Source of the DNA: Klebsormidium nitens
Taxonomy: Eukaryota > Plantae > Klebsormidiophyceae
Assembly: GCA_000708835.1 (NCBI GenBank)
Contig: DF237007.1
Coordinates: 197,291-261,290 of the forward strand
Reading direction: 5' to 3'
Length of the DNA: 64,000 nucleotides
Positions 12,990 through 54,069 of the stretch are shown one piece after another. The notes below the pieces were generated by a model. That model was not told where the DNA came from and searched no databases. It was given only the letters and a program-made list of their open reading frames with translations. Position 1 is the stretch's first letter. Each line of letters begins with the position of its first letter. A program made the position numbers and the translations under genes.

Positions 12990-13708
12990 ACCTTCAGAGC
13001 AAGTACTACCCTGTGCTCTTTTGCCTTTTGCCCCTTGTCTTTGAAGCAATGGCGCGGGCTGTGCGCTGAGAGTCAGACGGTGTGGTTGTGTAACTGACAG
13101 TTTAGGGGCTGCGCGGCTTTCTGGTAGGGCCTGCGTTCAGCTTGCATTGGTTTCCTTGTTCAGCAAAGGTCTGTGGGTCCAACGAGAGCCTGGACTGCAA
13201 ACAGCGGGTTTGCCAAGCAGTATCCCTCTCTGGCGCAGCGACATTGCTCGGCCCAGTCACCTCTTTACAAGATGTGACGCCCTGCTCATCTCGTCAAACG
13301 GCTCGGCGGCGTTGGATTTCTTTGGCAGCTGTCCATTAAGAATCTGTTACGCATAGAGAGCGATGAGCTTTGCTGGGGCCAAGGACGAAGCGCGCCGCTG
13401 GTTCAACCAAAGCATGCCTGGTTTCTCATTCTCAGGTTTTGCTGGGGCCAGGAGCCTGGGGGCGACAGAATTGTGCATGGGCTCTGAGACAGCCAGCTAC
13501 TTGGTAAACCAGTAAACCCTCGATAGTCTTTGCTTGAGAAACTTAATCTACCTGACAGCTCGCATGCGCTGCCCTTCAGGACAACATGTACACTTCCAAA
13601 GTCACGAGCTGAATTTGGAGCATAGTTACTAGCATCAGCTAGAAACGCCCTTTACTTACCACCCCAGAGTGAGGTTCTTGTGACTTTGCCCCCCCCCTCC
13701 CTAGGGCT

Positions 13709-18597: not shown

Positions 18598-20619
18598 TGC
18601 TGAAGATGCTCTCCCTGCAGCAAATGGACAATGTTGCCTGCTTCAGCAAGCCCAACCGCAGTTGAGGTGAACGTAAAACGGGATACTCGATGACAGTGAC
18701 ACCCTGACGAGGTAGGGACTGAAGATTACCACTCTGTCTCATGTGACACACTCCCGGGCTTCTGGAGGGTACCTGGCTGATCCACAAGCAACAAAGTATG
18801 GGAATTACAAAAGAAGGACTGCAGATATCAAAATTCCTTCCCATTGAACGCTCCCATGAAAAAACTCATCCCACAGGGGTCCAAACAGATGGGGTTTTTG
18901 GTCCATGTAACATCACATGACTCTGACACATTGTCTACTTGTCATCAGGACATGGGATGTTCTGCAATGATTGACGGGCTTGCAGGGCATACACAGTGGT
19001 ACAATTGTGGTACAACACTTCTTCACAACCAGCGGTCGTATGACGTTTCTCAACCCCTATGCGCATTCGGCTTTATGCAGAAGTTGGTTAAGAATCTATG
19101 CTGCACCAGAGCCGTTGGTTGAGTCATTTAATTGAAGCTGGAGCAGCATGCCTACTCAACCTGGATGCAGAACCCCTCCATAGAAGCAACACCACATTGT
19201 CAAATGAAAACTAACCTCTGCTTCCGAAGCCCAGCCCTGCTGCCTGACCCCTGTCCACCTTTCCCAAATGCTCGCAGCTTGTTTGAGCTGGAAGAACCAT
19301 TCTCAGCGGCAAGCTTCCCAATGCCGATGCCATGCTTACTGCAGACTAACCCAGCGCAGGAAAGACTCTGTCAGACCCACCTCCGTCCGCTCAAGTGCTA
19401 AATTCGCTGCAAGAAAAGCAGCTCAATGATCTCTGTACAGTGCTGCCAATGCCAAATCGCAAATGATGCCAATGGCGGATCATGTGTGTGTGTGACACTG
19501 AAGATCTGCAAAAGCCAATGCCAGCATTCAACTTCCAAGTTCAAAAATTTCTTGCTGTCTTGCTCTATTGAGGAACTACTAGAGGTGGAAGAGACAGGCC
19601 CGCCATATTACCCGAGGCTGAAGAGAATTTCTGGGGGGTGTGGAAAATTGGCCTTCCGGCCAATTTTCTCCACATATAGTGTCCATATGATGTCCATTTG
19701 ATGCTGCATATTTATAGGCAAGTTTGGTCTTGAGACAGCTGAGTGTTGGAATACCGACTCTACTGGCCGCCCGGTTCCCAAATAATAACAATATTACGTA
19801 TCTGAAGATCCATAAGCTGTGTGCTTATATAAGCTGTACTCTTGATTTTGGATGACGAAAGTTGCACTCAAAATTGCCTGCAACATGGTCATAGGTACCT
19901 ACCGGTATCACGAGCCCTGGTTGCCATTACTGGAAGTCGCCACTGGCCAGTCGTCCTGATCGCCGCCAGTCGTCTCTTTTGACAATCGGACGGCTCAGAC
20001 TTTACACGAGTATCGTATTACCGAAACCGGCAGCCGACGTCACGGCAAACCTGCCCATGAAGCAATTGTGGCTGTCCGATACGACTTTTTTGACTCTCGA
20101 CGGCTCAAAGTCAGCCTTTTTATTTCATTGAAACTTCGCCGACAACTCTCAGAGCGAACAGTTGCAGGACGATCGCAGAGACAGTCTCTTAACTAGACAT
20201 GCACACTCCCGCCGCCAGCGGCCGGGCGGCGGTACGAACGGGCATGGCATTTACGATCGTGGTTCGTAACCTGCACGACTCTAGCCGCACGTGATCGTTC
20301 GATTTTGTATTTGTCGCCTTCTACTTCGTCATCGGACGGATCACGTCTTGCATCCAATGACGTTCGATCTCAGGCCGGCTTCAATCGAAGTACGGTAATT
20401 GGCCAAGAATCAGTACGTACTGGTCGGTCCCATGCTCAGTATGGCAAGGGGCACATAGGAAGTAGCCGAACTTTTTCCGAACCGATGAAACGTCGGCGCA
20501 AGCCAGCGCAAGCGGTAGATACCGCGGAAAAGTTCGCAGGCTCAACGCGATAGATGGTACATACTTCACGGTACGTAAACTCCCCGAGGCAACTTAGCTC
20601 CCGGGAATGCCAACAAACA

Positions 20620-21314: not shown

Positions 21315-25963
<4,649 letters not shown>

Positions 25964-27000: not shown

Positions 27001-27366
27001 NNNNNNNNNNNNNNNNNNNNNNNNNNNNNNNNNNNNNNNNNNNNNNNNNNNNNNNNNNNNNNNNNNNNNNNNNNNNNNNNNNNNNNNNNNNNNNNNNNNN
27101 NNNNNNNNNNNNNNNNNNNNNNNNNNNNNNNNNNNNNNNNNNNNNNNNNNNNNNNNNNNNNNNNNNNNNNNNNNNNNNNNNNNNNNNNNNNNNNNNNNNN
27201 NNNNNNNNNNNNNNNNNNNNNNNNNNNNNNNNNNNNNNNNNNNNNNNNNNNNNNNNNNNNNNNNNNNNNNNNNNNNNNNNNNNNNNNNNNNNNNNNNNNN
27301 NNNNNNNNNNNNNNNNNNNNNNNNNNNNNNNNNNNNNNNNNNNNNNNNNNNNNNNNNNNNNNNNNA
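27001..27366. other. Assembly gap (366 N)
   Basis: Run of N. Confidence 1.
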
Positions 27367-27949
27367 GCCGATCCTGATGCTATCTGCAGCCTATATTTAT
27401 CTACCTATTTCTGATGATTATTCTAGGTCTTCGTCTTCGATCTTCGGCTTTCTTCCCGTCGAAGTAGGTCGCGACACCCCGTAACGTCCCTGTTACGTCA
27501 CCAGTCTGCATCTTAATGGTCTGAAACGGCCTTCTGGAAGCTTCCAAAGCTCCATAGCCTATGAACCACCCTCTGCATATATGAATATCCCTAAAAATCC
27601 TGCGAGGATCACGCTCCTCGTGCATGCAATCTCATAGCATGTCTTGGAATGGTTCCATGCCTGAGGGATGCCTGAGCGCCACAGCTATGAATCTTCCCCC
27701 CTTAAAACTATTGGTCCCCAATATCTACAAACTTGCGGGCCTTTCACCCTATGCTCCACTTCTCTTCCAACTTCTCAGTTCCCTAAGAACCCCTGCCGCC
27801 CAGCATGTCCTCGTCTACCTGACTTTTCTTCAGCAAAAGCTCCACGTTATTGAGATGGTATGGATACACATGCCCCACTCTATCTTCGACTTCGACCAGC
27901 TTTCGTGCCGAGTAAGTCGTAATGGGCCGTTAGAAACTACGGTATACCC

Positions 27950-28520
27950 ATATTTGTCCGAATTTTACCTCCCTTTATTCCGCGGAATATAAGGAGGGAA
28001 CAGTATTACATATATTACACGGTTTACGGTTGTTTCGTCTTCCTCCCTTTTCTCTCAGGGGTATACTACCCCGATTTCGGCCTTCCTCTTCCTCCCTTTA
28101 CTCCGCGGAATATAAGGAGGGAACCGAAACGGAGGAGTCCCGGTTTTGTGACTTAGATTTTTTTTGCAAGTTTCTCTCAGGGGTATACTACCCCGATTTC
28201 GGCCTTCCTCTTCCTCCATTTACTCCGCGGAATATAAGGAGGGAACCGAAACCGCGGAAACCCGGTTTTGTGACTTAGAAATTTTTTGCAAGTTTCTTCC
28301 AGGGGCATACGACCCCGATTTCGGCCTTCCTCTTCCTCCCTTCTCTCGCCGAAATTTCGGAGGGAACCGAAACCGCGGAAACCCGGTTTTGTGACTTAGA
28401 AATTTTTTGCAAGTTTCCTCCAGGGGCATACTACCCGGGTTTCGGCCCTTCCTCTTTCTCCCTTCTCTCGCTGAAATTTCGGAGGGAACCAAAACCGCGG
28501 AAACCCGGTTTTGCAACGTG
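27950..28520. repeat. Tandem array, ~121-bp period, 4-5 copies, immediately upstream of the KDZ transposase
   Basis: The core CCGCGGAATATAAGGAGGGAAC / CCGGTTTTGTGACTTAGA..TTTTTTGCAAGTTT recurs at ~27977, 28100, 28223, 28343 and 28464. Confidence 0.9.
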
Positions 28521-28828
28521 GGCTTCTTCAACTTGGAGCAGACACTGCTAGCAGGATTTGGGCACTTCCTCCTCCTCGCTTCTTTCGCTCGATATCAGGA
28601 GGAAAGGCAACGGAGGGGCTAGGATGGTTGATTCAGCATTTTCTGGCACATCAAAGATGGTTCACCTCTTCCGAGGGTGAACGGGAGAAATGCTGGCTGT
28701 CGAATACCAGGTCGTACAGTGACGAAGTCCAGCAAGGGGGGGGGGGGCGCGCGGGGTCCCCAGGACGTACATGACATTGCTTCATAGCTGCTGGAGCAGC
28801 GGCCCAGGTTTAGAACCAGAGTCACAGT

Positions 28829-31800
28829 ATGAATCCGAGCAAGAAGCAGCGATCCGCTGATAAAGCGATAGCGCAGGACTCAGTCTCCATTGATTCCCTT
28901 GCAGCACCACTGACTCTGCTGGGCTTCGCCCTTTTATTGGACAGCATGAAGCTGTACCCGGCGTCCTTTCCGGAACGGCCCCACGTCATCGCATCAGTTA
29001 TAAATAGGGCACTCCCTCCCTCCGAGCAAGTGGGCCATGTGGCAGTGTTCAATATAATCCAGAAGCTCAAGACGCTAGAAGGACCGTCTGCCCTAGACGC
29101 TGCTGCGTGCTTAAAGCGTCCGTGTATACAACAACTCGCAGCAGAGGCAGACAGCCTGCACGTCGCAATTCCCCGCACAAATGTCTGTCTGAGATGCAAC
29201 ACACAGCTGCGCTGGGCTGACAGCCCACAGAGGCCATTCATCTTTCCTGAGTCCGGGAAACCAGCGCGTGGAATCGTGCATGACAAGGTGTGCAAAGACT
29301 GTGGGATTCTGTTCTCTGTGGGCTTCTACACATTACAGGCTTCCGGTGTCCGACGACCATACCCAGCATCAGCCGACCATGAGCGGTGGATCCAAGTGTC
29401 AGGCGAAACGTCGATCAGCAAAGGGCTTATGCGAGCACACGACCAGAACCTGTGAGTTTCCACGGTCCTGCTGCAAGTCTCCTGAGGTTCCTGGGTCCCC
29501 TTTTGCAGTGCACCTCATTATGTAGCTGCAAGACTTGCCTGCACTTGAAACCAGCGCACGTGCGCTGGGCGCATATATGGATTAGAAATTCTGCCTCGTC
29601 CTTCCTCCTTGACACTTGTATTACATCTCAATGTGCTCAAGCCCACAACCCCCTTTCAACAGGTACCACAACCACGTCACGTTCGCCGGCGCAGTCAGGG
29701 CGCACAATGACCTGTGGGGCCTCGATCGTTTCTCAGAGGCTCCTGAAGCTGCACTCGAGACAATGCGTTGGCGCCGTTCTCTGAGGGGCAGCCTGCACAG
29801 GGAGATTTTCGAAAGAACTTACCTCCAGTACTGGGCAATCAGGTTCTGTCAAGACGGTTGCCCTTCCCTGCTAGATGAAATTGATCTTCGCTGGCCCGTT
29901 GACCGCATCCTTAGTCTCCTCAATGACCCGATCTGGTGCCAGCTGAGAGACGAGGCCCTCGCACACAGCAAGCAGTGTAAGGATCCGCTCTGCGGCCAGT
30001 ACGATCATCTAGACGGCAATGCAAAGGTGTTTAGGGACTGCTGTCGGCAGAAGGACGTTGAGCAGTTCACCACTGCCATTGGCAGGGTTGTCAAAGGCTG
30101 TCCTAGCACGCCGGTCAAAGGGAAGAAGCTGTGTCAAGCGCACCTAGCAGCAGTCCACCTAGCTGAGCCAAACAGCGCAGGCGCGTCCGATGCGGCGGAG
30201 GGAGAGGCTGAGAGCACCGGGGCTGAGATAAATCTGATGACCGACAGCGATGACGAGCCTGATGAGCTAGACTTAGAAGAGACGCAGCCAGAGCAGCGCC
30301 AGAAAGAAACTGTCAGTGCTGCACGCGCAGCACCAGCAGGGCAGGCGTGGGACACAGAGACGGCGCCGGTGGCACTCCGCACGCGTGGAAAGCAGCGAGT
30401 CTTGCAGCAAGATGACATCTACGAGGTGGAGCGCATCGAGATGCACCGCATCAAGAACGGGGTGAGCTTTGCTTACTGTAACTGGTTGCATGGACAGGGC
30501 GTTTGTCTTTCCTTCCCATTCTTATCTTCACAAAAAACTGCGTGCCAGCTGAACCAGCGACGCCACCCTGGAGCTTCCTGAGCTGATCTGTGACCTATCC
30601 CAGGACTGTAGAACAATTTGCAGCACGCTGATTCACGGATGTTGTAGCCTGGCATATACTTTGACAAGCAAGCCTGTTTGAGGTATCTCTCTACCGCTGA
30701 CACATGTATCTTTGCGCACAGTGTAGTTCGTCATCAACGCTGACGTGAGATTTTCTTCAGGTACCCATCTACCTCGTCAAATGGAAGGGCTACCCTTCTA
30801 CGGAGAACACTTGGGAAACCGAAGAAAACTTAACTGCGGTTACGAGAGACGTCCTCGATGAATACTTGAATTCGCAGCCCCAAGGTAAGCAACGTCCGCG
30901 AATGTTCCAACGTAATTACGATCATCCAATAGCTGCATTTTGATCAAAACAAGGGACTGACCGACTACTCTTCAAGCTCCTGCTGCGTTGCAGTTGCTGC
31001 GTAAGCGCAACTTACATAGCCTCCGCTCCATAAGCACATTCTTCTTCTCATCGGAAGCACGGCTCCTTGGCTTTGGAAGCCCGTCCTTCGCCTAACCCCT
31101 TTCTCGGAGAGATCCACAGACTTTCCAACTCCAACTGAAATATCCGCCAGTTCAGCACCTGAATTATGCGCAAGACCACCACAGAATCTAATCCAACTGT
31201 GCGCTTACTTCCCTTTTACCCCCCGCACCTCCCGCCTCACATAACTCGACACCGCAGGTGATTTCTACACGAGGGACCGCAAGGACCTGGAACCTGACCC
31301 CGCTCCAGTGGACGACGCCACAGGCAGCGCGCCGACAAAGTCGAAGAAGGCGGTAGCATGCACCCCCCGTACAGCGTCTGACGGGCGCGGGGTTACGGCT
31401 GGTACGGTGGTGGCTTTCTGGGTGTGCGGATACATGTTCCCTCCATTGGAGCTCATCTTGTCAGAATCGACGACAATGGTGAGCAGCTACCTCTCTAGTC
31501 ATCTTTTATATATCCACCTAGGATCTCATATGCACGGGGTTTGGGCAGGTCTTGCAATCATAAACTGTTGACCAACACGACGCGGCTTCAGATGGTCCGC
31601 GAACCACTTGAATGACTTGCCAGGGCCCAATGAAAGGAGTGTGGGGTGGGGGGTGGGGAGGGAAGGTGGCAATGCACTTTCTTGTTGATAGACAGCGAAC
31701 GAAATGGTCCTCTTTTGATCCAGTCCGCAGACAGTTTGTAGCACAAGCGAAAAAGGCAGCACGCAAACAAAACCACGAGTTTATTGCGTCCATATTACTT

Positions 31801-32906
31801 TTGCAGGTGCATCATTACTTCCTACAGCTGTTTGCGTTCGCAAAGATGCCACGCTTTGTCGGGATGGACGACATGTGCCACTGGGCACGTTTCGCAGCCA
31901 GTGGTGACCGACCGACGCTTTGCGCAAAAACAAGGGAGTTCGTCCAGAACGTCACCAAAGTCGGTGAGTGAACCAACAGAAGTTGAACAACGACACTGAT
32001 CTGTGACTTTACGGTTGTCATTCTGCGAGTACACCTAGTTCCAATGTAGCGCGGACCCTAACACGCTGCTGGCACGCCTAGTCTCCGACCAATAACAGCC
32101 AGTGTCTGCGACAGCCATTTCCTGCAGCTCCTGTGGGGGGTTTGTCGCCCTTCTCCAGCTTTCCAACCTCTCTGCTTTTGGTGCCCCTAGCATGGCATGC
32201 AGAACAACGGGCCATACGTTCTCACTGAACCTACCCTCAATCTGTCCCGCAGTCGACAAGTTTCACTTCAAGAAAAACCATGTCGGGAGATAGTATGCTG
32301 AAAACACAAATCCGTACAAGCACGAGGAACCGGAGAACGCAAACATGTCGGTTTGCGAGCAGCCCTTTAAGTGGTTCGGCGGGTTTAAGAAGACGATGAG
32401 GTAAGACACTGGTCTGGACAGCTGCACCAGAAAGCATGCGAGCAGTTTGCTGGGCGCAGATTGTGTGCTATACCATCTCGAAGTATTCTTGCACGAACGC
32501 GAAGGCGACTGGGTAAGGATACATGCGTCAGCACCATGCGTGCACAAGCCATGCGTCAACATCAGCAAGTTTCGTTCATGATTGGCTGTTGCGCAATGTT
32601 GCTTAGACAGAGGCTCGCTCAGGTATTACGACATCCTGGGACTTACGCCTCAAGTGGCGCGATGTCCGAGCTCTCCCTAAAGCAAACTACTTCACGTGGT
32701 GCAGGTACATGAATGAGCACCGTTTCAAGTTTCTTCTTCTAGTTGTGACAAAACTAGACCATATTCGCCGAGATGGACTCCTAGAAGCCAAGATCAGGGC
32801 AATTGAAGCTGCACGCGCCAGGTCCACACCGACGTCAGTCACGGCAGCCCTGCTACGACAGGTGAGACGGATCCTAGTCCATGTCCATCTCCCTGCCGAG
32901 TTCTGA
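28829..32906 (+). mobile_element. KDZ (Kyakuja-Dileera-Zisupton) superfamily transposase gene: CxC5-like, CxC6-like, chromodomain and KDZ core; one in-frame TAG
   Basis: Phase-consistent exons 28829-29451, 29663-30461, 30761-30884, 31258-31478, 31807-31963, 32253-32400 and 32705-32906. Cys clusters CLRC...CKDC and HLDGN..CC..GC..P..KKLC..H. Chromodomain IYEVERI...YLVKWKGYPSTENTWETEENL. Core motifs TAG.V.AFWVCG..ELILSES, GMDDMCH, VDKFH..NH, NMSVCEQ.F.W..GFK, MNE.RF.FLL. TAG at 32291-32293. Confidence 0.8.
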
Positions 32907-33068
32907 CGGGTTTACGACACCTCGCGATCCTGACGGGCCCCCAGGGATCCCCTCCCTGCATACATAGAAACATTCTATTCAGGGAAGGCGAAGGCACGCG
33001 CAGACGTTTGGCAAAGTTGTGACATCAAGAGGAAACTGGAACCACAGCTGCATCAAAAACCAGAGTCT

Positions 33069-34910
33069 CTACACAGGCTTTTGTCTGGTCGGCCTTTTGG
33101 AAACGTACCTTGCTGACTGCCCCGCCGGGCGCTTGTGGTAATACTCGGGAAGAAACTGTTGAATTGTCATGCGCAGTCGCGACAACTTGTTCGTCAGTGC
33201 CACGTACTCTGCCTCAGTATCCGGGCGATTCTTGTGGAAAACGGGATGAGAAATCTTGCACGGGGGCTTCTTCTCTTTGTCGTTCACGTATCCAAAGCAG
33301 TGCTATCCGTCGTTTTCAGCAGAGGATGCGTATGCGAACAACTCGTCGATGTCAGGCACGTTCCCAAATTTGCGCGTCTTCCCTACTTCTGTCCTCCCGA
33401 TCGTTTCTTCACGGAAGTCCAGGAACACTCGTCTCAGTTGCTTGTCCATGACGCCCTGCAACCAGGACGTTCCATCAGGATCTCAAAAGCACGGCTGCTA
33501 CAACAAGAAGCTCCGACATACACAGCGAACTCCGTATGATCTCCGATAAGCCCCATACTGTCTTTCTCTACAATGATATCAAACTCACCAGATAACGCGA
33601 CCCATCGTCGTCGGAAGCCTCCGAGTCTGAGTCGTCAGCGTCATCATCCTTCGTTCCTGGAAGGTCCCATTTCAGTACCTCTGAGCAGACTTTCGTTACC
33701 GCGCTGTCGTTCTCAAAATACACTCGTTGCTTCGTGGTCAGATTGACGTAGTTCCAAGCATAGCGAACGCTGTCTTCACTGACTTCGAGCACTGCGTCGG
33801 GGAAGACCAGGTTCTCCGGGTAAGTCGGGTCAGACACGAGTTCCAGGACGTGGAAAATCGCAGCAGTTTGAAGCGCCTCCCCCTTCGTCTTTGCAATGAG
33901 ACCTGGGACACGGTATCACACATTAGTGATTGCATCCAATGAAATTCAGGGCCACAAACGGAAATGCGTTTCTCCCCTCGCTCAATCTCATGCCATCTTC
34001 AGTCGACCAGTGTAAGCAGCTGTGAAACTTACCCGCCTTGTGGAGCTGGTTCTTGTCGTATAGCTTTCGCAAGACCGCCTGGATGTTGTTGAAGCCTTCT
34101 GCGTAGACTTCTTTTGCACGCCCGCAAAGAATCCATTCTCTTCTGACGACCCCTCCAAACGTGTCGTGCGTCAGCTGCCAGATTCGGAAGAACCACTGCG
34201 TCCGAGAAAAGAGATAGCCATTAACATCAGGGAACGAACGCACAGTAGTGCAGACGAGCGCACACGAGATCGACAAACGTTCAAGCTACAACGTTGCAGA
34301 TCAGCGTTGATCAACAGAATGGCGACATCTAGCATAAAAGGAGCAGACGTGTGTCATACCGTCTGGACTTTCTCGTCGTCCTCGGCCACCAGGTTGAAAT
34401 CCGCGGAGATGTCCAAGTCCTCTGCAAGATTTTGCACTGAATTAGAAAGCTTCCTCTCTGCAGGAAGCTCGGGAGCAGACTGTCGAGACATCAACACTCG
34501 TTCACAACGGGGATTCCTCCTGTCCACCTTCAACCTTCTGTACAGGTGAGTCAGTGTCGCAAATTACAACGCTCACCGAATGCAGGAAACACAGGCTCCG
34601 GAAACACTGTAGTCCACCGGTTTAGGAGACCGTCGTTTGGTGTCTTTGACACCTCCCTCATCAACGGTTCCGGCTGGGTATAACCGGTAATGGGAACGTG
34701 CGTGAAGGGGCAGGATCTTTCTTCCTGGTCGCCAACCAATTCGCGAGTCCATTGGCTGCCTCCTTTCAATTGTAATGCTCGGATCCTGTCGCTGTTGCCT
34801 TTCTTGTAGTTGTACAGCGTCTCAAAGAACTGCTGCCCCTCCTCAAAGAACAGGAAGCCGCTGTGGTCTTTTGCAGCAAACAGGAGCTGGAATAGTCGCT
34901 CAAATGTAAC
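33069..34910 (-). CDS. Spliced DUF3987 (YfjI)-like putative NTPase gene, convergent with the KDZ transposase; one in-frame TAG; 5' exons unresolved (possibly to ~36640)
   Basis: Phase-consistent exons 34910-34577, 34421-34360, 34195-34033, 33902-33589 and 33455-33109. Motifs VTFERL..LL...GFLFFEEG..FF..LYNYK, ITGYTQPE, NDGLLNRW..VFP, AKTKGEALQTAAIFHVLE, EVSEDSVRYAWNYV. TAG at 33305-33303 with the reading frame continuing beyond it. Confidence 0.65.
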
Positions 34911-37282
34911 CTGCACTCAAACAGATAGTTTGTTTTGTGCAGACTGATGGCTGACAGCAGGGGTAGTGACTCAGCAAGATTATGCGATGCAGTGCCGAGG
35001 ACAGCACTCAACTAGGTGCATTCTATTCATCAGCAATCTTCGAGTAGCAGAAGAAGCAATCAGAACTTGTAGATACACCGTAAGTTCAGCCTTGATTGAA
35101 CATTTCTGAGATGAGATCAGCTCTTTCAAGCCTTGCAAAGTGAGACTGGCTGGCTAAATGCTGTCCTGTTATCGTTCCTCCCTCTTGTACACGATCTACA
35201 CTACAGCGACAAATGCAATGATCCTGCATAATAACGGCTTATCAAGCATGTCTTATCGTCGCACAATTCTGCATGCAAATGAAAAACGAGATGCAACCAG
35301 AGCAAACCCCAGGCTAACCAATTGCAGATAAAAGCCTGAGATGCTGGACGATTCAGATACCGTGCTCAAAATCCTATACCATGAACCATCATTCGAGACA
35401 TTCCGAGCCCAAACCGACCAGACGAATAAAGACCAAACGTGCACACGAGTCTTGGAATAGAGGAGCAACATGCACAGGTAATCATTGTGAATGCAATATG
35501 CATCCGGTTATAGCTAGCTGGAAAAGAAATACATCTATACAAGTCATTCGAACTTCGCCTTTATTCAATCCTCCTTATGCAAGATGGATGCACAGGCTTA
35601 CCGCTCCCGGTGACAAACGAACCATATGCAGAATAAACGCACCGGTTCGAGAAACATACGTCCATTGCAAGAGCGACGAACTCGGATTCGACCAGATTAC
35701 GCATACATACGTTTCGACCATTCCAAAATCTGGTACCCTAAACCTTTTGATCATATGTACCGTACTAAGCTCGCATATAGCAAGCAAATGCAGCTTTCAA
35801 ACTTGTGCATTTCCTAGTGAACCAATTGGTTCACTAAGTTGCGGGTTTCAGTCTGCAGTGTTATACCCTGATATTCAATTGTTTTATTAGCTTTATAACG
35901 GTCCAGACGTTGCGAGCGTCAGCTAGGTACAAAACTTCGGGGCCCAAGTCATCATTGAACTAGCGCTGCAGCTGAGCCCTGCCTGCAGATGCGACACTGT
36001 ACTAAGCATCTTCAGCAAGAATGCATGTACAGCCTCAAGTTCACATCAAATGCACGTTCCATCCACTCAAACAGCTAGATTTTGATAACCCCAAGTAACT
36101 CTTCGTCCTCCAAGTCTGCTCGGCGCGCTTGCTAGTGATTGTATCTTGGCTCAAACCCCTACTCACCATTGTCTCGCCTTTCAACGACGACCAGTATTTG
36201 CAGCAACTCAAGTAAACCTTTCTATAACGGCAACTCAAGTCTGCAGATGGTAAAGCAAGCGGGGCGTCCAAGTAACCCGTTCGTGAATTCGCTCAAATCT
36301 ACGCGTTCGCTAACCATAAATAAAAGCAAACTCAACGTGCCGCGGCAGCTAAGCTCGCTTGGGCCCGGTTTACAAACCCTCCAGGAGCCTCCATTGTTCC
36401 ATATCGCCAAAGAAATTCCAGCCAAAGAAAGTGACACTAAGATACATTTCGCTAGAACATCCCTGGCAAGCCCAATTCGCCCATCCACGTGGATCCGAAG
36501 GTGGCGCGCCGTCGTATCTTGCCCGTTTCCTGACAGATCTTGCGCCGCGCTTGTTCGTCGTGCCTGACACGAGCAGAATACCGCGTCAGGAGAGACTTCA
36601 CATCGTTTCCTTTTGGAATCGTTTCTGGGTTCCGATATGACACGCCTTCCGTGCAGTGAGAGAAAATTCAGAATACTTAGAAAACGCCTGTTGCTGCTGG
36701 AAAAACGAGGGCTGCATGTTGAACCTCAAAATTAAGGTTTCCGTTTAAAGGCGGATCGTTGGTTACCTCTCCATGAAAACGACAAGCAAGGACGCCTTGG
36801 CACAAAAAGCGATGACTATTTGAGTGGGTTGCCCCCACAGAAAAGGAGAAAGGAAAACTTTAAATTGACCACTTTGAAAGCAGAACACCGACAACCGGTA
36901 GCAAAGCAGTGAGCAAGTTCCCTGGTACTTCGGTAACTTCAGCCTGTCCTATGAGCGCCCCCATCTTCGGTCCTGTCTTGTTTGCTCAACAAACAACTCC
37001 AGGACGATAATCTTTACTGCGCTGCCCACCAATTGTTGCCTGACTGATGCACGGTTGAGAGCAGATACTTCAACAAACCATCGACCCAGGAGCAACGCGG
37101 AAAGAGTGAGATTCTTGAAGAACAGACTCGAGGAAGCAGGACGACTCGTGTTTTGACACTGCTGTCAAAAGCGCATCAAACCCAGTTTCTGGCGACCCTT
37201 GTCCTGTCAAATAAAAGACCAACAAATTAACGACCGACAGCATTCGCAAGCCAAGCCTCCTCCAAATCACGCCCCAACAAGC

Positions 37283-38131
37283 TCACCTGAACGTGCACGC
37301 AATTGGGTTCAAGCACCCCATCTTCCCACAAAAGAACATGCAGTCCACATTGCGCCCATCCTCCCGCGCTTTCTCGAGTACCTCGTCCCAATACTCCTGC
37401 AGTTCCTGCCACCAGTCCGGAACCCCCCGCGTGTGGAACGGGTTGTAACAGCTGTTCCGTCCCATCTCATCAAAGCACATGCCGCAGTATCCTCCCCCCT
37501 CAGGAGGCGGAAGAACGGTGCCCCGCGCCCCCGCATTACACGCCATGGTCCAAAACACGTCGACTATATTGGTAAGGTGATGCGGCCCCCCCTCGATGAA
37601 CGTGGGTTCCGTCGAGGAAAGCTCCCTTAGCTGATTGGCTAAGGCTAGAGGATCTAGACAGAGGAACTTTTCCACGCGGCCCCGCACGAGCGCCTCCGCA
37701 TTGCGGCTGTCCCACCATGTAACGCCGTATTGGCCCCCCGGAACCAGCTCATCCTTCGGAACCTGCGCCGACGGGCTCGCACCCCCCCTTCGGTCTGGGC
37801 CATCTGCGTACGCATTCACCCCCCTATTCCAGTATGGGGGCAGCGGAGAATCTGGGCTTGGGGGGCTTTGCCCATCGCTCAGCAGAGGGGATTTGAAAAT
37901 CACAGGAGTGGGAGTTATGTAGAAACAGCCGGTTGCTGCAGCTTGCAGCATAGAGGAAGCGAGGGCCTGAATCTCGAGTTGGTCGCGGGCGGCCTCCTCC
38001 CAGTCTGCCGACGGCGATGGCTTGAGGCGCTCTTCTTTTGGGGGGGGGCTGTCACTAAAGAGAATAGTAGAGGGCAGGCTGGCACTCCTGCCGAAGCGTG
38101 AGCGCAACGGGGAGGCCTTCAAAGGGGACAT
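37283..38131 (-). CDS. 282-aa protein of unknown function, copy 2 (intact paralog of 13709-14557)
   Basis: Same length, no indels, about 26 mostly conservative substitutions by manual count. All Cys/His residues and the upstream acceptor are kept. Confidence 0.8.
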   Translation of the reverse strand: MSPLKASPLRSRFGRSASLPSTILFSDSPPPKEERLKPSPSADWEEAARDQLEIQALASSMLQAAATGCFYITPTPVIFKSPLLSDGQSPPSPDSPLPPYWNRGVNAYADGPDRRGGASPSAQVPKDELVPGGQYGVTWWDSRNAEALVRGRVEKFLCLDPLALANQLRELSSTEPTFIEGGPHHLTNIVDVFWTMACNAGARGTVLPPPEGGGYCGMCFDEMGRNSCYNPFHTRGVPDWWQELQEYWDEVLEKAREDGRNVDCMFFCGKMGCLNPIACTFR

Positions 38132-41100
38132 AGCCCTAAGGAGGGGGGGGGGGGGTTACAAGAATCTCAATCTGGAGTTGTAAATCAGGGCTTTTCTAGC
38201 TGATGCTAGCAACTATGCTCAGGACTCGGCCAATGAATTTGAAAGTGTAGGGTAAGGGCGGAGGGCCAGCGCAGCGCATGCAAGCTGTCAGTAGTCTACG
38301 TTTCCCAATCAATGACTACAAGGGTTTACCAAGGAAGTGGCTGTCTCAGAGCCCGTGAACATCTCCGGCGCCCCCAAGGTCTTGCCCCCAACAGACACCC
38401 GAATTCTTGGGGGCACACTGAGGAAACCCGAGCATGCTTTGGTTGAACCAGCAGCACAAGCTTGGTCCTCCCTCTGCAGCAAAGCCTCATCTCTTGCCAA
38501 GCAGAACAGATTGCTAATGGACACCTGTCAACAAGAGTCCAATGCCACAAAGCCGTTCGAAGAGACGGGCCAAGCAGGGCGTCACATCTTGTAAAGAGCT
38601 GACTGGGCCGCGCAATGTGGATGCTGCTTGGCAAACCAGCTATTTGCAGTCCAGGCTCTCGTTGGACGCACAGACCTTTGCTGAAGAAAGAAACCAATAC
38701 AAGCTGAACGCAGGCCCTACCAGAAAGCCGCGCAGCCCCTAAGAGTACACTGTCAGTTACACAACCACACCGCCTCAGCGCACAGCCGGCGCCATTGCTT
38801 CAAAGACAACTTGAATTTGAAGGGGCAAAGGCAGAACAGCACAGGCCCGGTGGTAACTTGCCTAATAGTAATAGCCAACACTTAAATGTTGGGGCGGAAG
38901 TGAGCCGTCTAACCAACTATTCTCCTTCATCGACGGTCCTTAGGAAACACAACAACTTGTCGTGCTTCATCTTCACCGTCCAGCCAGTAATGCTCAGACT
39001 ATCAACGATTGAGAAAGCCTCCTTCTCAAAAGCTAGAGACTTGTCTTCAGCCAATTCGCATTTGTCACTGTGTTGCACTGATGACTTCAACACAAGCAGC
39101 AAATTGGCGCCATCCTGATCCACATGTGGTGGTTTCTGATGCAGTCTTTTCATGCAATTCAGCATGTGGGACTAGGGAGGCCTGCCAGCTTTTCGCATTC
39201 CTTCTTCAAGATGAGCAATGCAAATGTTCTGTAGGTTGCAACAAACATCAAAAGCTGGGAGCCGACATGGCAACCGCTGAGGAAGACGCCTGGTGGGAGG
39301 GCCTGCCAGACCAGATTGAGGACTGGGACGCTCCGCTCCTCCCGCCGATCGCTTCACAAAGCACCGGTCGCCGGAAATCGTCGGGTGAGAAGGCATCGCT
39401 CAAGGCAATCCTCGTGAAAGCGGACCGGCATCAAAGTGGTGTCAGCCCCCCACCGCAAATTGTGGGTGTACATGGTGGGGGTGGGGGAGCAAGTGAGCCT
39501 GTGGCGGGGGGAGGGGAAGAAGAGCTGGGCCACTCGAATCAAGCTTCGCCAGCTGTCCAACGAACAGTTTGAAGTCCTTTGCATGTGGCGCCGGTCGTCT
39601 CAAGTTTGTTAGCAAGCACTGGACCTTCTGGTGCCGACCTCCCACCCGCCCACTCTGTAATTGACAAGCACACTCCTCAGAATAGGGGGCACAATCTGAG
39701 AGAGCAGCAGCCGTACTCAGATGTGGCCCCTCCCATCCCTCCTGTAAACAGTGATGGCGTCGCACTCTCAGAGGAGCAGCGCAGCCGGATCGAGGCGAAT
39801 CGAATTGCTGCGCTGCGGAGGCGAAATGCAGCGACGTGGTACCAGGCAGCACACACGTCCCCAGGGATGCTCATCCCCCCATTTCAGCAGTCAGTTCCTT
39901 GTCAGGTTTACCCCCCTGCCCAGGTGCCCCCACACCTCCAGCCCCCCCTTTCAGAGGTTCCCTTCCCTCAAATGCATCTCCCAGGGTCGACGGCCCTGCC
40001 TTCCCATGCCAATGTGGCCCACTTTGGGGCCCGTCTGGGGGCTTTGGAGGAACGGGCGATGCACGAGAGCGTGCCAGCTGTCAGCCCGGGAAGGAGAGCG
40101 TTGCGTCCGGTCCTTCTCACGTGTCAGCAGCAAATGAGGGATTGCCAGGTGTCGCCAGCTCGTCTGCTGCCGGCTCCTTGCCAAAGTGCTCAGATACCCA
40201 TTGTGACTTGCCCTCGCTACAGGCGTGTCATCGGATCGGGGGAACAGCGAAGGCGGCGGAATATGGGGGGCAAGAGGTGAACATAGAAGAGGTGGACGCG
40301 AGCAAGACTGAGCTGCGCAATGGATTTAAGCCCGAGGTTGGCAGCGAGAAGTTGAGCGACAGTCCCGAGTTCGAGGTGCCAGAAGACTTCTGGGACGATG
40401 TTGATGAGGGTCAGGGGAGGAACTCTGGGGGCGAGGGGCAAACTGCAGCGGATTCTTCTGATGTGAATAGGCCCCTCCGAGTGAATAGTCTCTCTGGTCT
40501 GACTGCGCCCGCCAGTGCCAACATACCCTCTGAGGGGGTCTTCATAAACTCAGCCGCGAGGGGGGGTGCGTCAATCGTTGTGCAGCCTGGGGGGCATTCT
40601 CACCAGGGAGTGTTACCGGCGTTCTGCAACGGCGCCTCTTCACACCAGCCTGACGCAGTTCCTACAGCCCTTCCAGCAACCCCCAGAACCTCTTAACATT
40701 CCCATCGTGCCTCAGGACCCTGGGGTCATTCGAAGACCTCTAGAAGTTTCCCTCGAGCTCCACACGGTCGACCTTTTCAGGGTCTCGGTCCACTATGCGT
40801 TCTGCGAACCTCCCTCTGGGAGTGTATTCGCACCAGATCCGTTTGAGAATCCGGAGCAGAGAACCAGGTCCGTGCTCGAGCGAGCGTGCCCAGGGGTGGT
40901 TCCACAGAAGTGGGTATCTGATGAGACTCTAGACAGCGGGGGTTTTCTCGTTCTACCAATTATCGCTTACGACGCCGTTCTGAGGGCCTTGTCAAAGGTC
41001 CCAGAAGCAAAAGCCGCAGGCATTCCGGAACTACACTGCGGGCGCTGCACGCCAGATGGGGCCCTGCCGAAAACGCTAAAACCGGGTCGAGCAGTGCCAA

Positions 41101-43516
41101 AGAAGAGATCACGAAAGGGGATTTGCTGCCGGGGGATCCCTCCGAAGCCCAGTCCCCACCCCCGCCAATCAAGAGGCCCTGTGACAGCTCCTGGCGGCCG
41201 CTCAAAAGCTGGCACATTGTGAACGACGAAGTGGACGCCCTGATGGAACAGGGCCTTCCGTCGGGGCTGCGAAAGACGCTGCTGCCGTTCCAGCGGGAGG
41301 GGGTGCGGTACAGCCTGCGCAGGGGGGGGCGCTGCCTGATAGCAGACGAAATGGGGGTGTGGAAGACAATACAGGTGGGGGAGAATATGGACCTTACTGC
41401 GGCTGTTGGTAACCGCTGGATTGTGCAAAGATGATCTGCTGAACATCATTGCTTTTCAGTTGCAGCTTTTGCGGATCTGAGTCGTCCTCTGGATTTTCGT
41501 TTTGAGCCGCTCCAAACTTGGTGCAGATAGTCTCTCCGGTTCGAATGTTTCAAAAAACGACTGCCGTACTTTCGGCGCAGTTGCTGTGTTTTGCGGCAGG
41601 ACCTGATTGGTGTATGCACAAATTGAGTTTTGAATTCTGTCAAAAGCCGTGACGTCCAACCAGACCAGCCCACGAGTGCTCTCGCAAACCATTTTCAGAT
41701 CAGAATCTTTGGGTAGCGCAACCGAGCTTGTCCGAATCCGGGAAGCCAACTAAATCTGCATCTGCGCCTCCAACCACTTCATAACGCTGCACACTTACCA
41801 CTTGTTCAGGGCCGCAGGTAAGGAAGCTTCCCAGCCAATTGCCTGAAGCACTCGGAATTCATCCTGCTATTCTTGACTCTCGAGTCGCCAACCGAGTTGA
41901 TGATATCACTCCCCAGGGAATCACTATCGCCAGCTGTTACCGCGCCGAGTGGCCGCTCCTAGTTGTCGTTCCTGCCAGCATGCGGCTGCCCTGGGCGGAA
42001 GAACTAGAGCGGTGGCTTCCTTTCCTGGGCCCAAGGGACGTGCACCTCGTGTTCTCCTTCCAGAACGATCTGCAAGAAGGGGCGCCGTGCCCGAAGGTAA
42101 GCCGAATTGCTCAAAGCCAGAGTTGTCATTGAGATTCCGTACTGTACCGCACTTCAGGTCGTAGGTTTTTGCGGAGCGCACTGACTCCTTATGTACAACT
42201 CATTCCTGGATCGCCAGTGAAGTTACCTCGCTCGTTGTTATCAAAAGGCCTGGGTTTGTTGCTATCCTCAATCAACTCTTGACTGCAAACGTTCATTCTA
42301 GGGAATCGCGCTTTCTCCTTCGAAATGCCCCATTTTTGGGTCGAAGCTGCGTAAGGTGCGGCATAGAGAGTAATCTTTCGGCTAGATAGAAGAGTCAATT
42401 CTCTCGCCTGATATAATCACGTCAGCCTTGACGGAGTTGCGCAACCAGAAAGTGTCAAGATAGGTGCGTTCCGAGGTTTACTCGACAACGTTAGAGGCTC
42501 TTCGTCAAATTTCCCAAGCCCTTTCTTAATTGCAAACGGCTTGCATACGTCGGGCGTGATTTCACGTTAGAAACGACGCCTGCTCTGCTTTCTTTCCTGC
42601 TCATTCTCCTTCTCTTGCCCCGTTCTGCTCTCAATCCGTTCGCGAAGGCCTTGTAAACGGATGTGTTCAGAGACCCTTGCGTCTACTTGGGCAGGCGTTT
42701 GGAGTTTGAGGCCGTTTTCATTAGCACACAGCGAATCGATCTTGCGGCCCTAGGATCGCACGGCTCTTCATCCCACAGCTAACCTTCCCTTTTCTGACGC
42801 TACTCTCTTTACATCCTACCCCAGGTTGTTGTCATCTCGTATACGATGCTGCGCCGCCTGAAGCGGACGTTCGCCGCCCATAAGTGGGGCGTGCTTATCG
42901 TGGACGAGAGTCACAACCTGCGTACGACCAAGAACCTCAAAGAGACGGAGGAGAAAGAAACGGTCAAGGAGTTCCTGCAAAAGACGAAGCGAGCAATCCT
43001 GCTATACGGAACGCCGTCGCTTAGCAGGTTCGTCGGATCCATTCGCTTCGACAAACAGTCGCCTTCCCCTGCTTTCCTGCTTTTTGAGAGTCGGATTGCT
43101 GGACGAAAAATCCTTTCCGTCCTTTTGTTTAGAGATTTAAAAAGCCTAGTCTTTGCTTTTGTATCGCTGTCTGTTTTGGGTCTTGCCTTCCTTCTCGATT
43201 CGGTCCTTGCTTTGGCTGACCAAAAAGTCAGCTCCGCGTTTGAGCAGTCTCCATCCAACCCAATGTCCAGGAATCGCTGAAATTGCGGAACACAGCAGCT
43301 TCGACCGGCATCTTCTTGAGTTTCCAAAATCTCGAAGCCTCTCGATTTGCGCCTGTCTCCCCGCCTGTGCTTGTAGAAAGGCCGTTCCAAAAAGTCCAAC
43401 AGGGAAAACCACGTGTTGGTTGGCTCTGCTCGATACACTTTGCTTTTCTTCCAAACCGACAAGCTTCCGAAAGTAGCCAGAGCCTTAACCCATTTCGCTA
43501 ACCTAGCATTGGCTTA

Positions 43517-44135
43517 CAGGCCGGGTGACACCTTCATCGAGGTGGACGACCCGTGAACAACAGTCCCGTTCGGTATTCTGCTTGTTATCTTCGAGCGTCA
43601 ACCCTTTTCACGTACCTAACCCAACATGCCTAAATCTTTCCTCTCTTGCAGGCCGACTGACATTTTCCACCAGGCCGATGGTTTGTGAACCGGTCTGCTC
43701 GGCCGCAACAAATATTGTTCGCCAGATATGACTGCGAGCGCAATGTTTGCTTAACATTGCGAGAACCTTAACCATTCTTATAACCTAGTTCTAAATTCCG
43801 CAGGCCTTTCGACATCTTCTACCAGGCAGATGCTTTGTGGACCGGCCTTGCTCAGATTGCCTTCAAAGCGGCGACTTTCAGAAGCAGAACTTAACCCACA
43901 GGCGTTTGGTCAAGGAAATTGGTTAGTTTCATCCTCGCAGGTCATTCGACATTTTCCACCAGGCCGATCATTTGTGGACCGTTTGTACGATCAGCTGGGC
44001 TGGCTTTCTTTGAGTAGAAGGAAACTTTGAGTAGAAGGAAACTGTAACTCCTTAACCCAAAGGTTGGGCTCATTGCTCATGCCTTGACGGGGTCCGTAAC
44101 CCGGAAAAAAACCCCGGAATCCTCCTTTCTCGCAG
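43517..44135 (+). repeat. Decayed intronic copies of acceptor plus start of exon 4 in the ZRANB3 pseudogene
   Basis: CAG|G(C/T)C..(T)GACAT(T/C)TTC(C/T)ACCAGGC.GAT at ~43651, 43803 and 43940 versus the true acceptor at 44135. Confidence 0.8.
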
Positions 44136-47100
44136 GCCGTTCGACATCTTCCACCAGGCCGATGGTTTGTGGACCGGTTTGCTTGGCCGGAACAAGTACA
44201 CGTTCGCCAAGGCGTACTGCGACGTGCGCACGCTGCGGCGCGGGTGCGGCAACGTCGTCAAGGACTACTCCAAAGGAATCAGGCTGCATGAACTGCACGT
44301 GCTACTTGCGGAGACGATCATGGTGGGGAGAAATTCTGCTTGCTTGATCCAATCAGTGTCAGAATCTTAAGTAAAGGCGATTCTCAAGCTAAAAGCGCTT
44401 CTGTGCACAATGTTCTATCAATGGATAGAACATTGATAGAACGATTCGGTGAATCATTTTGGTGTTGAGGGTGAGACACTCGTGTTTTTTTGCAGTCAAT
44501 TCCCGCTATTGTCTCCCCAGAACTTCAACCTGGCAAGTCGCCAAACTGCTGAATTGCCAGTCGTTTGGTTGCAAAGTGTCATCTTTCGGAGCCGTCCAGC
44601 TTTTTGAAACTGCTAGGATCTACGTTGCCAACCACTACCAGGTTCTATATTGGGAATCTCACCATTTCACGACCTTTGTCCAATCGCGTCGTTCGTCCGT
44701 TGCTCAATCCCTGGAAGAATCCTTCTTAAGGCTTTTGAACCTGGAATTGGACCACCGAGTGTTGGAGGAAGCCAAAAACGACAGTCTTCGGACTCTTCCC
44801 CCAGGTCCGGCGGCTCAAATCGGATGTCCTGGATCAGCTCCCCCCGAAGCGGCGCCAGGTCATCCGGCTGAAACTAGAGGCGGGAGACATCAAGGACGCC
44901 AAGGAACGGACCGTGCAGTTGGCGGCTGAGCTGGCGGCGGCGGGGAAAGTGCGGGGGGGGAAGTTTGCGAGGATGGAAGCTGAGATGCTGGCGGGAGAAG
45001 AGAGCGAGGAGGGGGGCGAGGAAGAAGAGGCGCTGAGAAGGCTGGTGGAGGGGGGGGGGTAAGTCTGCCTTCCGTTCTTGGTTTCTTGGGGGCACGTTTG
45101 GAATCCTCTTTTAGGAGAAGAGTTGCTTACGAAGCTCTCTTTGGTGCTGGCGGAAGAGGACGAGCAGGGGGGGTTGGAAGAAGAGGTGCTGAGAAGGCTG
45201 GTGGAGGGGGGGGGTGAGTAAATCCGTTTCCACTTTTACTGGGGGGGTGATTCGTGGTCTGCTTCTTTTGGGAAGTTGCTCAGAAAACAAGCTGCGATGC
45301 TTGCGGAAAAGAAGCAAGCAGGGAGCTTGACTGACAAAAGGATCATTATGCTTCATTCTGGTGTTGCAACAGGAGGAACGCGGGGAGAGGGGAAATGGAG
45401 AGGCGGTGAAACGGAATGATTCAGGCCGGTCGGAGTGTTCGAGAGTGATTTGTAATATTCTGGGGGCAGCTTGGGCTTTTCATGTTCACCTCTCCGAGAC
45501 ACTCGGCATGGTCACTAACTCATTCGACTGCGCGTCAAGAAGTTCTGGTGGGCAGAGGTCTCACTTTTGGCTCCGAACATGGTGCCTAGTGACTGCTTTA
45601 TACCATGCACTACCTGCTTAGCGCTCACTTGCCGCTTATGCCGCTGCAGACGTCAGCGGAAAGGAAGACGGGGGCCTGACTTACCAACAGATTGGCCTTG
45701 CGAAGCTCCGGGGGGTGAGGGAGTGGCTGGGGAACAACGTGGGTCTTACCCCCCAGAAAGAGGAAGGGGCAGAAGACGTACCCAAAATGATCATCTTCGC
45801 TCACCACATCGAGCTGCTCGACCGGATCGAGGTACGAGGCCCTAAATACCTGCATTTGAGCGTGACGTCCTTCTTGATCAGCTGTTTACTAATTTGTCTT
45901 GTCTGATGTTGGATGTGATTATCTTTTCTTCTTTCGAGTTGGAGATCGAGAAGGATGCTTGACTACCTTTTGAAACATCCTCAAACACTTTTGGTTGTTG
46001 TTTGCTGAACCCCACTGGTGACTCGGCGCATGTCGGAGCCTTTGCAGAGGTGTATTGCTCTGAGCTGTTGTCCTTGATACGTGAGCTACGTATTTCGAGC
46101 CTGTGTTGACACCATTACAATGATATAACCCGATGCCGAGAGCCCATCAAAGTTAGAGTTGTTAAATCACTGTCCCGATGACAGCAGAGCTGTCTGAAAG
46201 GTGGGATGCAGGATCGGAGCATGGATATTTCCGTTGCGCCCCCTTTTCCAGAAAGCTTTGCTGATGCGTACTCTGAACCTTGAAGAAGTGGTGACAACTT
46301 TTCTTTTCTGTTTGCAGCGCTACGTGCATGACTGCGGCGTTGATTACGTCAGATTTGACGGCAGCACCCTCGGCCGCGACCGGCAAGCTGCGGTCCAGGA
46401 TTTCAAGCACCGGGACGAGATCCGAGTAGCCATTGTGGGCGTGACAGCTGGCGGCGTCGGATTGGACTTCAGCGCCGCGCAGACAGTCGTCTTTGCGGAG
46501 CTGCCCACGTCATCTGCTGACCTCATGCACGTGAGCACGGGGTGGGGGTAGATTGAATCCGGGATCCGCACTGCGCAGGATTCGAAACAAGGGGTTCTAA
46601 ACGCGCATGTTCAAGCCAGGAACATCCAAGCCCCCCGAAGCGTGATGAAAGTACGCAGAGTAATGAAAGAGAAGGACACTATTTGGTCTGTTCTCCTTAC
46701 CTTTAAGCACAACGATAAATAAAGTCGTCAATCGAGGTTCATATCGATTTCGAAGACCGATACAAATGAGGATCCTAGACCCAAACTATGCTGACGCAGG
46801 CTGAGGATCGCGCTCCAAAGTTCCGTAGACAAGCACTTGGTCTGCAAACAGTCCCGAACTCTCAGTCCATCCGGGAGATGACAAAGCCTCACATAGCCAG
46901 TCAACTTGCTTGACATTGATTCTTGTTCCACCCGTTGTTGACACAGGCCAAGGATCGTGCTCACCGGCGGGGCCAGTCTAGTGCCGTCAACGTGTACCTG
47001 TTCTGCGCCAAGGACACAGGCGACGAAACCAGCTGGATGCGGTTAAGCGAGTCGTTGGAGCGGGTCACCACCGTGGTTAACGGGTCCGAAAACGCGGTTA

Positions 47101-48959: not shown

Positions 48960-49630
48960 TTTTTAAAGCGACTCCAGAGACCGCCCCTGAAAGCACCGCT
49001 CGAATTGGAGATGGACAAAATCAGGATGTCGTGACTGGTGTAAGGAAAGTGTTGAACTTTTGTTACTGGGCTGGAGGGTTTACCGTTGGGTTTCTCATCG
49101 TGCCTCCAGGGGGCCAGGGAATGGCGCTCAAAACATCGCTTGAATTGGTTCTGGACAAAGTCAGGGGGGATGGGACGGGGGTTAGTCTCTGATTGAGGCA
49201 TTCAAGCTTTCAACCAAGCTTTTCTAGGGCTGACATATACAGGGTCGCATCCTTTAGACCGGACTTCAGAAGGTGCCGCTCAAAGCATCGCTTCAACTTC
49301 AGCTCGACCATTTTAGGGGGGCCGCGCGACGGGGGTAAGACGTGTTCATTTTTTAGTTCAGGATTTACGTTCACAGTTTTGGTGCCGGACGAGGCCAGAC
49401 GCCGCCCTCTGGCATTCTGCTCATCCAAGAAACTTGATTCTGAAACCAACTATTTGGTGAACATACACGACTGCCGCTGACCTGGGCGTGACGTCAGCAT
49501 TCAGGGGTTGAGGACGAGTTTCTCAATGCCTGTAGGGACATCCAAAATGGTCGCTCACGTCAGCGTGACGTCATCCGCAGGGCCTGCGGGCCGGCGGGAG
49601 CAAGAAGCGCGTGGCGGCGCAGGACGAGGC
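48960..49630 (+). repeat. Intronic copies of exon 9 end plus donor (x3) and of acceptor plus exon 10 start (x2)
   Basis: Donor copies with GT at ~49040, 49181 and 49335 (true donor 48696). Acceptor copies at ~49504 and 49580 (true acceptor 49734). Confidence 0.75.

Positions 49631-53097: not shown

Positions 53098-54069
<972 letters not shown>

Follow-up and report, generated by a model that had tools for sequence, protein, structure and literature searches.

Do two decayed genes that stand tail-to-tail in Klebsormidium nitens, one for a chromodomain-bearing transposase and one for a protein of the DUF3987 family, belong to a single mobile element, and what kind of element would that be? The question was raised by an original prediction made from the letters of a 64,000-nucleotide stretch of contig DF237007.1 (assembly GCA_000708835.1, positions 197,291 to 261,290; the whole stretch is hereafter called the window), which proposed a two-gene mobile module beginning with a tandem array. 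We found that positions 27968–34916 of the window are probably the inactive, one-sided remnant of a large Klebsormidium DNA transposon family, whose complete members carry three spliced genes between related arrays. Such a complete element would encode a transposase that resembles those of Kyakuja-Dileera-Zisupton (KDZ) elements and contains an inserted chromodomain, a DUF3987 helicase of superfamily 6 (SF6), related to MCM, from a gene tail-to-tail with that of the transposase, and a PrimPol from a gene head-to-head with that of the helicase.

Recurrence of the transposase and helicase genes as a pair

We retrieved loci encoding relatives of either protein and mapped the reading frames of one of them, L001, onto all; for the window genes, single exons and public gene models served as queries. 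The tail-to-tail pair was detected in eight distinct loci, comprising the window, four further K. nitens scaffolds and three metagenome contigs. It is accompanied by a PrimPol gene in L001, L002 and L005 from K. nitens and in L003 and L004 from Joint Genome Institute (JGI) metagenomes, and by a PrimPol piece at the scaffold end in L006 (K. nitens). The contigs L009 and L010, also of JGI origin and counted as one locus, end short of the PrimPol position; L003, L004 and L009/L010 come from two metagenomes. Two K. nitens loci do not hold the full pair, and both are truncated copies: L007, with PrimPol and helicase, breaks off within the gene of the latter, and L008, with the transposase alone, breaks off within that gene. 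With these two included, gene order is kept across ten distinct loci, positions 28838–34916 of the window being collinear with L001 and L002 and the same order recurring in L003–L006, L008–L010 and the truncated L007.

The two genes have also diverged together. Pairwise exon identities of the helicase and the transposase were correlated (r = 0.88, 21 non-independent pairs), and the groupings of the copies agreed. Among closer copies, the ratio of nonsynonymous to synonymous divergence (dN/dS) was 0.13–0.18 for both genes at a synonymous divergence (dS) of 0.7–1.5; these identity and dN/dS values pool per-exon local alignments and lean toward conserved parts. Both genes have been under purifying selection. 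At the DNA level, the window aligned with the other copies in exons only.

The original prediction was that the transposase and DUF3987 genes may travel as one element, and it suggested counting their co-occurrence with tBLASTn. A search of this kind recovered them in the same orientation in all eight distinct loci, and this recurrence, the correlated divergence and the similar dN/dS values support joint movement. The helicase gene is multi-copy and not a single gene in a syntenic position, and all intact transposase copies that were found have the neighbouring gene. The proposed two-gene module was right about the pair and wrong about the gene count, since complete copies hold PrimPol as a third gene.

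Beside the truncated PrimPol and helicase copy of L007, a gene for a Plavaka-type transposase occupies positions 76–2017 of that locus. In L003, an uninterrupted open reading frame (ORF) of 513 aa lies beyond the transposase side at 16380–17921.

PrimPol and terminal arrays of the complete copies

Wherever that side of the element survives, the genes for PrimPol and helicase stand head-to-head (L001–L005 and L007, with a piece in L006). Herpes_UL52 Pfam matches were obtained on gene products of L005 and L002, and the frames of L001 and L002 contain the AEP/PrimPol motifs hLFFDLE and DxSVYxxxRxFR together with the zinc-finger motif CxxxxRxHxxNNG. A tblastn search found PrimPol nowhere in the window.

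In L001 and L002, tandem arrays of related sequence are located at both outer sides of the three-gene block. The L001 arrays (3933–4791 against 19334–19475 and 20208–20317) are inverted relative to each other, match at 82–85% over 53–62 nt and together span ~16 kb, and those of L002 (5311–5860 against 17890–18247) have the palindromic motif TTCATTCAGG...CCTGAATGAA in common. On the transposase side, the array lies ~430 bp beyond the 5′ end of the gene in L001 and ~1.7 kb away in L002. Array sequences vary from copy to copy. The L001 arrays are immediately flanked on their outer sides by a 33-nt inverted pair (3694–3726 and 20376–20408; 85% complementary), a candidate terminal repeat that would bound an element of 16.7 kb; when it was sought in the other copies, none had it. 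The search for shared boundaries that had been suggested thus yielded related arrays at both ends of L001 and L002 and no defined termini, the array sequences being copy-specific. We infer the mobility of the element from gene linkage and arrays rather than from termini, target-site duplications or empty sites.

Between the arrays of L001 and L002 there are only three conserved genes. No capsid or packaging gene and no family-B DNA polymerase gene was seen there, and the gene for DNA synthesis is PrimPol. In L002, an additional 282-aa gene model (16514–17449) separates the 5′ end of the transposase gene from the array on the right; neither L001 nor the window has it at that place.

The array of the window corresponds in placement to the transposase-side array of L001, lying ~320 bp from the start codon as against ~430 bp. 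The block had been said to open with a 121-bp array, and Tandem Repeats Finder (TRF) agreed closely, giving a period of 122, 3.8 copies and 91% matches at 28049–28513; self-BLAST widened the array to the limits given in Table 1. Three of its units contain a short imperfect palindrome around CCGCGG, with 17-nt arms that are 82% complementary. The array unit folded no better than shuffled sequence (z = -0.13), and no hairpin is proposed on that account.

The transposase gene

By tblastn, the eight exon blocks of the window transposase are collinear with ORFs of L001 and L002 and with the public gene model P0018 (KFL_003600140), at 33–76% amino-acid identity. The chromodomain was matched by PF00385 above its gathering score (47.1 bits, E = 2.2e-12, at 30749–30940), and it is kept in P0018 and in the gene products of L002, L005 and L006. 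In the exon translations of seven loci, the in-frame TAG of the window falls on a tryptophan that is conserved in the six other copies, so that ...KNHVGR*Y... is read in the window and ...KNHVGRWC... elsewhere. A second apparent stop at 31969–31971 is intronic, as a GTGAGT donor starts at 31968.

We call this transposase KDZ-like, rather than an established KDZ member, because no Pfam KDZ match was obtained and only weaker lines connect it with these elements. The relationship is probable on the following grounds. The motif pattern is one that we take to be of KDZ type. The nearest neighbours of P0018 by ESM features are clusters of PF18758 (KDZ) at 0.81–0.86, which is a lead that carries no alignment or E-value. 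The same kind of comparison, again free of alignments and E-values, gave 0.95, 0.91 and 0.91 for the closest neighbours of the last conserved exon, with KDZ in 26 of 30. In addition, the N-terminal piece of L002 matched the CxC5 model weakly (E = 0.022, 15.3 bits against a cut-off of 26.9).

The helicase gene

The minus-strand gene had been described as having at least five spliceosomal exons, and five GT-AG exons were confirmed by the public gene model P0001, which represents the window's own gene and matched all five at 100%. The fragment corresponds to residue ~159 through the end of the 562-aa paralogue P0005. Past its in-frame TAG, homology to P0005 and L005 continues for ~60 more codons, to ~33129, and the frame closes at a stop at 33069–33071. 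The stop codons of the helicase and transposase genes are 162 bp apart, close to the ~160 bp first estimated, and each gene is interrupted by one TAG, in line with the similar decay that had been described.

Assignment to the DUF3987 family was indirect. Pfam and NCBIfam returned nothing on all exon-sized pieces of the gene, and a direct match to PF13148 was absent for the window exon pieces and for P0001 at E <= 1. The family was reached only through an exhaustive phmmer search with the exon at 34554–34916, in which 1.84 billion representative proteins gave 15 matches, all but a few of them within this family. PF13148 matched the paralogues P0005 (54.5 bits) and P0009 (72.3 bits; cut-off 27), and P0022 carries a precomputed match. 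Identity to the window gene is 66% for P0005 over exon 2, and between P0001 and P0022 it amounts to 50% over 311 aa (BLASTP, E = 2e-100). Both P0009 and P0005 also matched PHROG 2373, "DNA helicase". The predicted DUF3987 identity of the window gene appears to hold through homology to these paralogues, not through a direct model match.

In the alignment of the family (A1), the Walker A motif GxxGxGK[ST] is present in paralogues P0022, P0023, P0024, P0009 and P0011. The N-terminal exon that would carry it was found neither in the 2.4 kb upstream of the window gene nor in the window as a whole. Because exon 1 is missing, the window copy has no P-loop, and the NTPase label that it had been given is inaccurate. 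The window gene retains a Walker B-like GFLFFEE, which aligns in A1 with LLFEE/FLEE of the paralogues and with APDE of the bacterial protein P0015.

An AlphaFold2 model of P0005 built from the 9-row alignment A1 was poor (mean predicted local distance difference test score 47), a profile of A1 matched nothing below E 0.3 among PDB sequences, and P0022 had no tblastn match in 50,697 phage records. A word-index search with A1 recovered only family members, the sole outside anchors being P0015 (bacterial, DnaB_N + DUF3987) and P0012. The latter is a distant helicase relative (28% identical, PF13148 at 47.6 bits) encoded on a 4-Mb contig (ENA ERZ25878582), where its gene adjoins one with the KDZ-associated CxC5 cysteine cluster. 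The association of helicase and KDZ may extend beyond Klebsormidium.

DUF3987 had been described as an uncharacterised family. The literature identifies its members as SF6, MCM-related helicases of phages and mobile elements, fused to or located beside AEP or DnaG primases (PMC4889955, PMC5862659), and a bacterial PriCT-DUF3987 protein is an ATP-dependent 5′-3′ DNA helicase that binds the neighbouring PrimPol (PMC11724360).

State and setting of the window copy

The window copy is a one-sided, inactive remnant. What is left is the array on the transposase side and the transposase and helicase genes, each with one nonsense codon and that of the helicase lacking exon 1; PrimPol, the Walker A exon and a second array are missing. 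A second array or terminal repeat was sought within the window and none was found. In the 1.5 kb where the missing parts would be expected (Table 1), we detected no tblastn or blastn similarity to L001–L007, and the ORFs there had no Pfam match. An Rfam scan of 27366–37300 returned no family.

Contigs assembled from four presumed RNA runs, each from a different study, were searched, and none was placed on 29100–35099, which is weak evidence of silence, as contigs cannot prove absence. Twenty presumed RNA contig sets hold 6–10% of the words sampled from 28800–36500. Because contig sets share words with this interval and yet the four runs leave 29100–35099 uncovered, some transcribed or repeated sequence must lie in the margins (28800–29099 or 35100–36500), the likeliest place being the unassigned 1.5 kb.

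The genes of the window are eukaryotic in build, with short GT-AG introns. As originally noted, the element block sits in a non-duplicated spacer. This spacer, of ~21 kb, separates the arms of an inverted duplication (~1–15254 and 36451–51000), whose blocks are 86–92% identical. Each arm carries a 282-aa ORF, at 13709–14557 (+) and 37283–38131 (-), and an inner island at 15139–15254 pairs with 36451–36566. The spacer also contains exons of porphobilinogen deaminase at 24074–25529 (PF01379, PF03900), of which a partial second copy is located ~28 kb downstream in direct orientation (53104–54140), in pieces that are 75–100% identical. We considered whether the element had made the inverted duplication. 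Its truncated end at 34917 is 1.5 kb from the arm boundary at 36451, no link was found, and the idea was left as speculation.

Table 1. Features of the element remnant and its immediate surroundings, in window coordinates
Feature	Position	Strand	Evidence	Remark
Assembly gap (Ns)	27001–27365			600 bp left of the array
Tandem array, 122-bp unit, ~4.5 copies	27968–28513	.	TRF and self-BLAST	
Spliced gene for a chromodomain-bearing, KDZ-like transposase	28829–32906	+	Collinear tblastn matches	Pseudogene
Transposase exon blocks	28838–29452, 29661–30143, 30348–30470, 30755–30889, 31254–31487, 31801–31967, 32198–32401, 32703–32903	+	Homology	
Chromodomain inside the transposase	30348–30470 and 30755–30889	+	Pfam PF00385	Split by an intron
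In-frame TAG of the transposase gene	32291–32293	+		In a conserved motif
DUF3987-type helicase gene fragment, five exons	34916–33069	-	P0001, paralogue homology	
Helicase GT-AG exons	34910–34578, 34422–34360, 34195–34031, 33903–33589, ~33455–33306	-		
In-frame TAG of the helicase gene	33303–33305	-		Near the 3′ end
Unassigned sequence, 1.5 kb	34917–36450			Place expected for helicase exon 1, PrimPol gene and second array

Proposed mechanism and alternative explanations

In intact members of the family, the transposase would bind the subterminal arrays and cut and paste the element, and the chromodomain may direct it to marked chromatin. PrimPol and the helicase could work together as primase and helicase, in the way known from mobile elements of prokaryotes, and would then prime and unwind element DNA, either for copying the excised or excising element or for refilling the donor site. 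The window copy is unable to perform any of these steps. A further-reaching proposal, which we hold tentatively and consider rather doubtful, is that intact members are self-priming eukaryotic DNA transposons, in which the element encodes, besides a KDZ-like transposase, a primase-polymerase and a replicative helicase that would let it start DNA synthesis independently of host origin firing. Such synthesis could take place by replicative transposition or by episomal amplification. In full-text searches of the literature, no description of a KDZ-type transposase together with PrimPol or a DUF3987 helicase came up.

Several points weigh against reading the locus as a transposon of this family. 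No element termini or target-site duplications have been defined, and no target-site duplication flanks the 33-nt inverted repeat of L001. On the transposase side, the left terminus of the window copy is concealed by the assembly gap. The array unit of the window is not common to the other copies, and its palindrome is weak. All copies are old: their synonymous sites are almost saturated, and no similarity of the window to the other copies was detected outside coding sequence, which makes recent mobility conjectural. PF18758 was matched neither by the transposase exons of the window, L001 and L002 nor by spliced P0018, on all of which Pfam returned only Chromo and sub-threshold noise; precomputed Pfam results for the 502-, 624- and 682-aa products likewise listed Chromo only, and no KDZ match was present on public spliced models of 397–682 aa. 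The KDZ assignment would accordingly lean on the language-model neighbours and the weak CxC5 match. Finally, that PrimPol and the helicase contribute to transposition is purely an inference.

We weighed three other explanations. That the neighbourhood is a chance pairing of two unrelated decayed genes might be argued from the fragmentary window copy, and from nothing else; this reading is refuted by eight distinct loci in which orientation and spacing class of the pair agree, and we assign it practically no probability. The three-gene block could instead be an integrated, capsid-less virus-like or plasmid-like replicon built around a PrimPol-helicase core, with the KDZ-like protein serving as its integrase or being a transposon that settled in a forerunner of the replicon. 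PrimPol is indeed of the Herpes_UL52/PrimPol kind, and in integrative elements of prokaryotes and in phages the pairing of PrimPol with DUF3987 serves as a replication module (PMC11724360, PMC4889955, PMC5862659). Against this, transposase and helicase have diverged in parallel from the time the family split, so that the transposase is no late insertion. Repeat arrays on either side are a usual feature of DNA transposons, and the L001 and L002 arrays enclose only three conserved genes, plus the one extra model of L002, with no capsid or packaging gene seen. We regard a replicon as unlikely.

Still less likely, in our judgement, is that the helicase and PrimPol are passive passengers or once-captured host genes, retained because they serve the host or help evade silencing and not for replication of the element. 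Giant transposons, KDZ elements included, often hold additional genes whose benefit is unclear, among them TET/JBP in fungi and a variety in Ectocarpus (PMC12730594, PMC12477816), and PrimPols also work in repair (PMC11724360). Against this stand the joint retention of two functionally coupled genes in head-to-head arrangement and a helicase dN/dS of ~0.13–0.17 across copies whose synonymous divergence ranges from ~1 to beyond 2. Recent capture of a host gene does not fit the phmmer search with helicase exon 2 either, as it gave ~15 representative clusters in 1.84 billion proteins, mostly in-family; and the reading is weakened by the fact that no clear single-copy host orthologue of either gene has been seen so far in streptophyte algae. 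A DNA transposon that carries all three genes remains the explanation that we favour, and we describe the family as a giant KDZ-like transposon, known in kind, with an unusual replication-type cargo.

Relation to known elements and significance

KDZ elements are giant transposons with accessory genes; fungal ones carry TET/JBP, and brown and green algae such as Ectocarpus and Chlamydomonas have KDZ elements with other genes (PMC12730594, PMC12477816). The Klebsormidium family resembles them in its large, intron-rich transposase, in which the weak CxC5 match may reflect the N-terminal cysteine clusters of KDZ elements, its size of >10 kb, the extra genes inside and its presence in an alga (PMC12730594, PMC12477816). 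It differs in that the cargo is PrimPol and a DUF3987 helicase instead of a TET/JBP dioxygenase, in that the transposase has an inserted chromodomain and stays below every Pfam KDZ threshold, and in that neither termini nor the 7–8 bp target-site duplications are defined. With prokaryotic PrimPol-DUF3987 modules, such as AgaPP-AgaPH (PMC11724360; see also PMC4889955, PMC5862659), it has in common a gene for an AEP-superfamily primase-polymerase beside one for a DUF3987 P-loop helicase on a mobile element. The Klebsormidium genes, however, are eukaryotic, contain spliceosomal introns and are divergently transcribed rather than operonic or fused, and their recombinase partner is a KDZ-like transposase, not a tyrosine integrase.

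Other comparisons are looser. Polintons/Mavericks and casposons also combine an integrase or transposase with the element's own DNA-synthesis enzyme, a purely functional resemblance; Polintons and casposons carry a family-B DNA polymerase, and Polintons capsid genes as well, whereas in the Klebsormidium element the enzyme is PrimPol, the helicase is encoded separately, and capsid genes were not seen. Helitrons and Replitrons are likewise eukaryotic DNA transposons that encode a helicase for their own mobilisation, which they do with an HUH Rep endonuclease and a superfamily 1 helicase in a rolling-circle-like manner, in contrast to the SF6-like helicase and KDZ-like recombinase found here. In chromoviruses (Ty3/gypsy), too, a chromodomain is joined to the integrating enzyme, and it is presumed to guide insertion to marked chromatin. 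Chromoviruses are retrotransposons, though, and carry the domain at the C-terminus of the integrase, whereas in the Klebsormidium element it lies inside a DNA transposase.

Eukaryotic cut-and-paste DNA transposons are thought to depend on host replication and repair for gains in copy number, and the exceptions known to us are Polintons and Helitrons, which use quite different enzymes. If the self-priming proposal is true, the Klebsormidium element would be to eukaryotes what integrative elements replicating through PrimPol-DUF3987 pairs are to prokaryotes. Concrete proteins for testing are encoded by the intact copies on DF238065 and DF237137. The window copy is a further independent case, deeply diverged, in which the genes are linked, and it illustrates how such an element decays. 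The retention of PrimPol and helicase beside a transposase, under selection and over long divergence, suggests a further route to self-replication, which, if true, would tie transposons of eukaryotes to the modules by which mobile elements of bacteria and archaea replicate.

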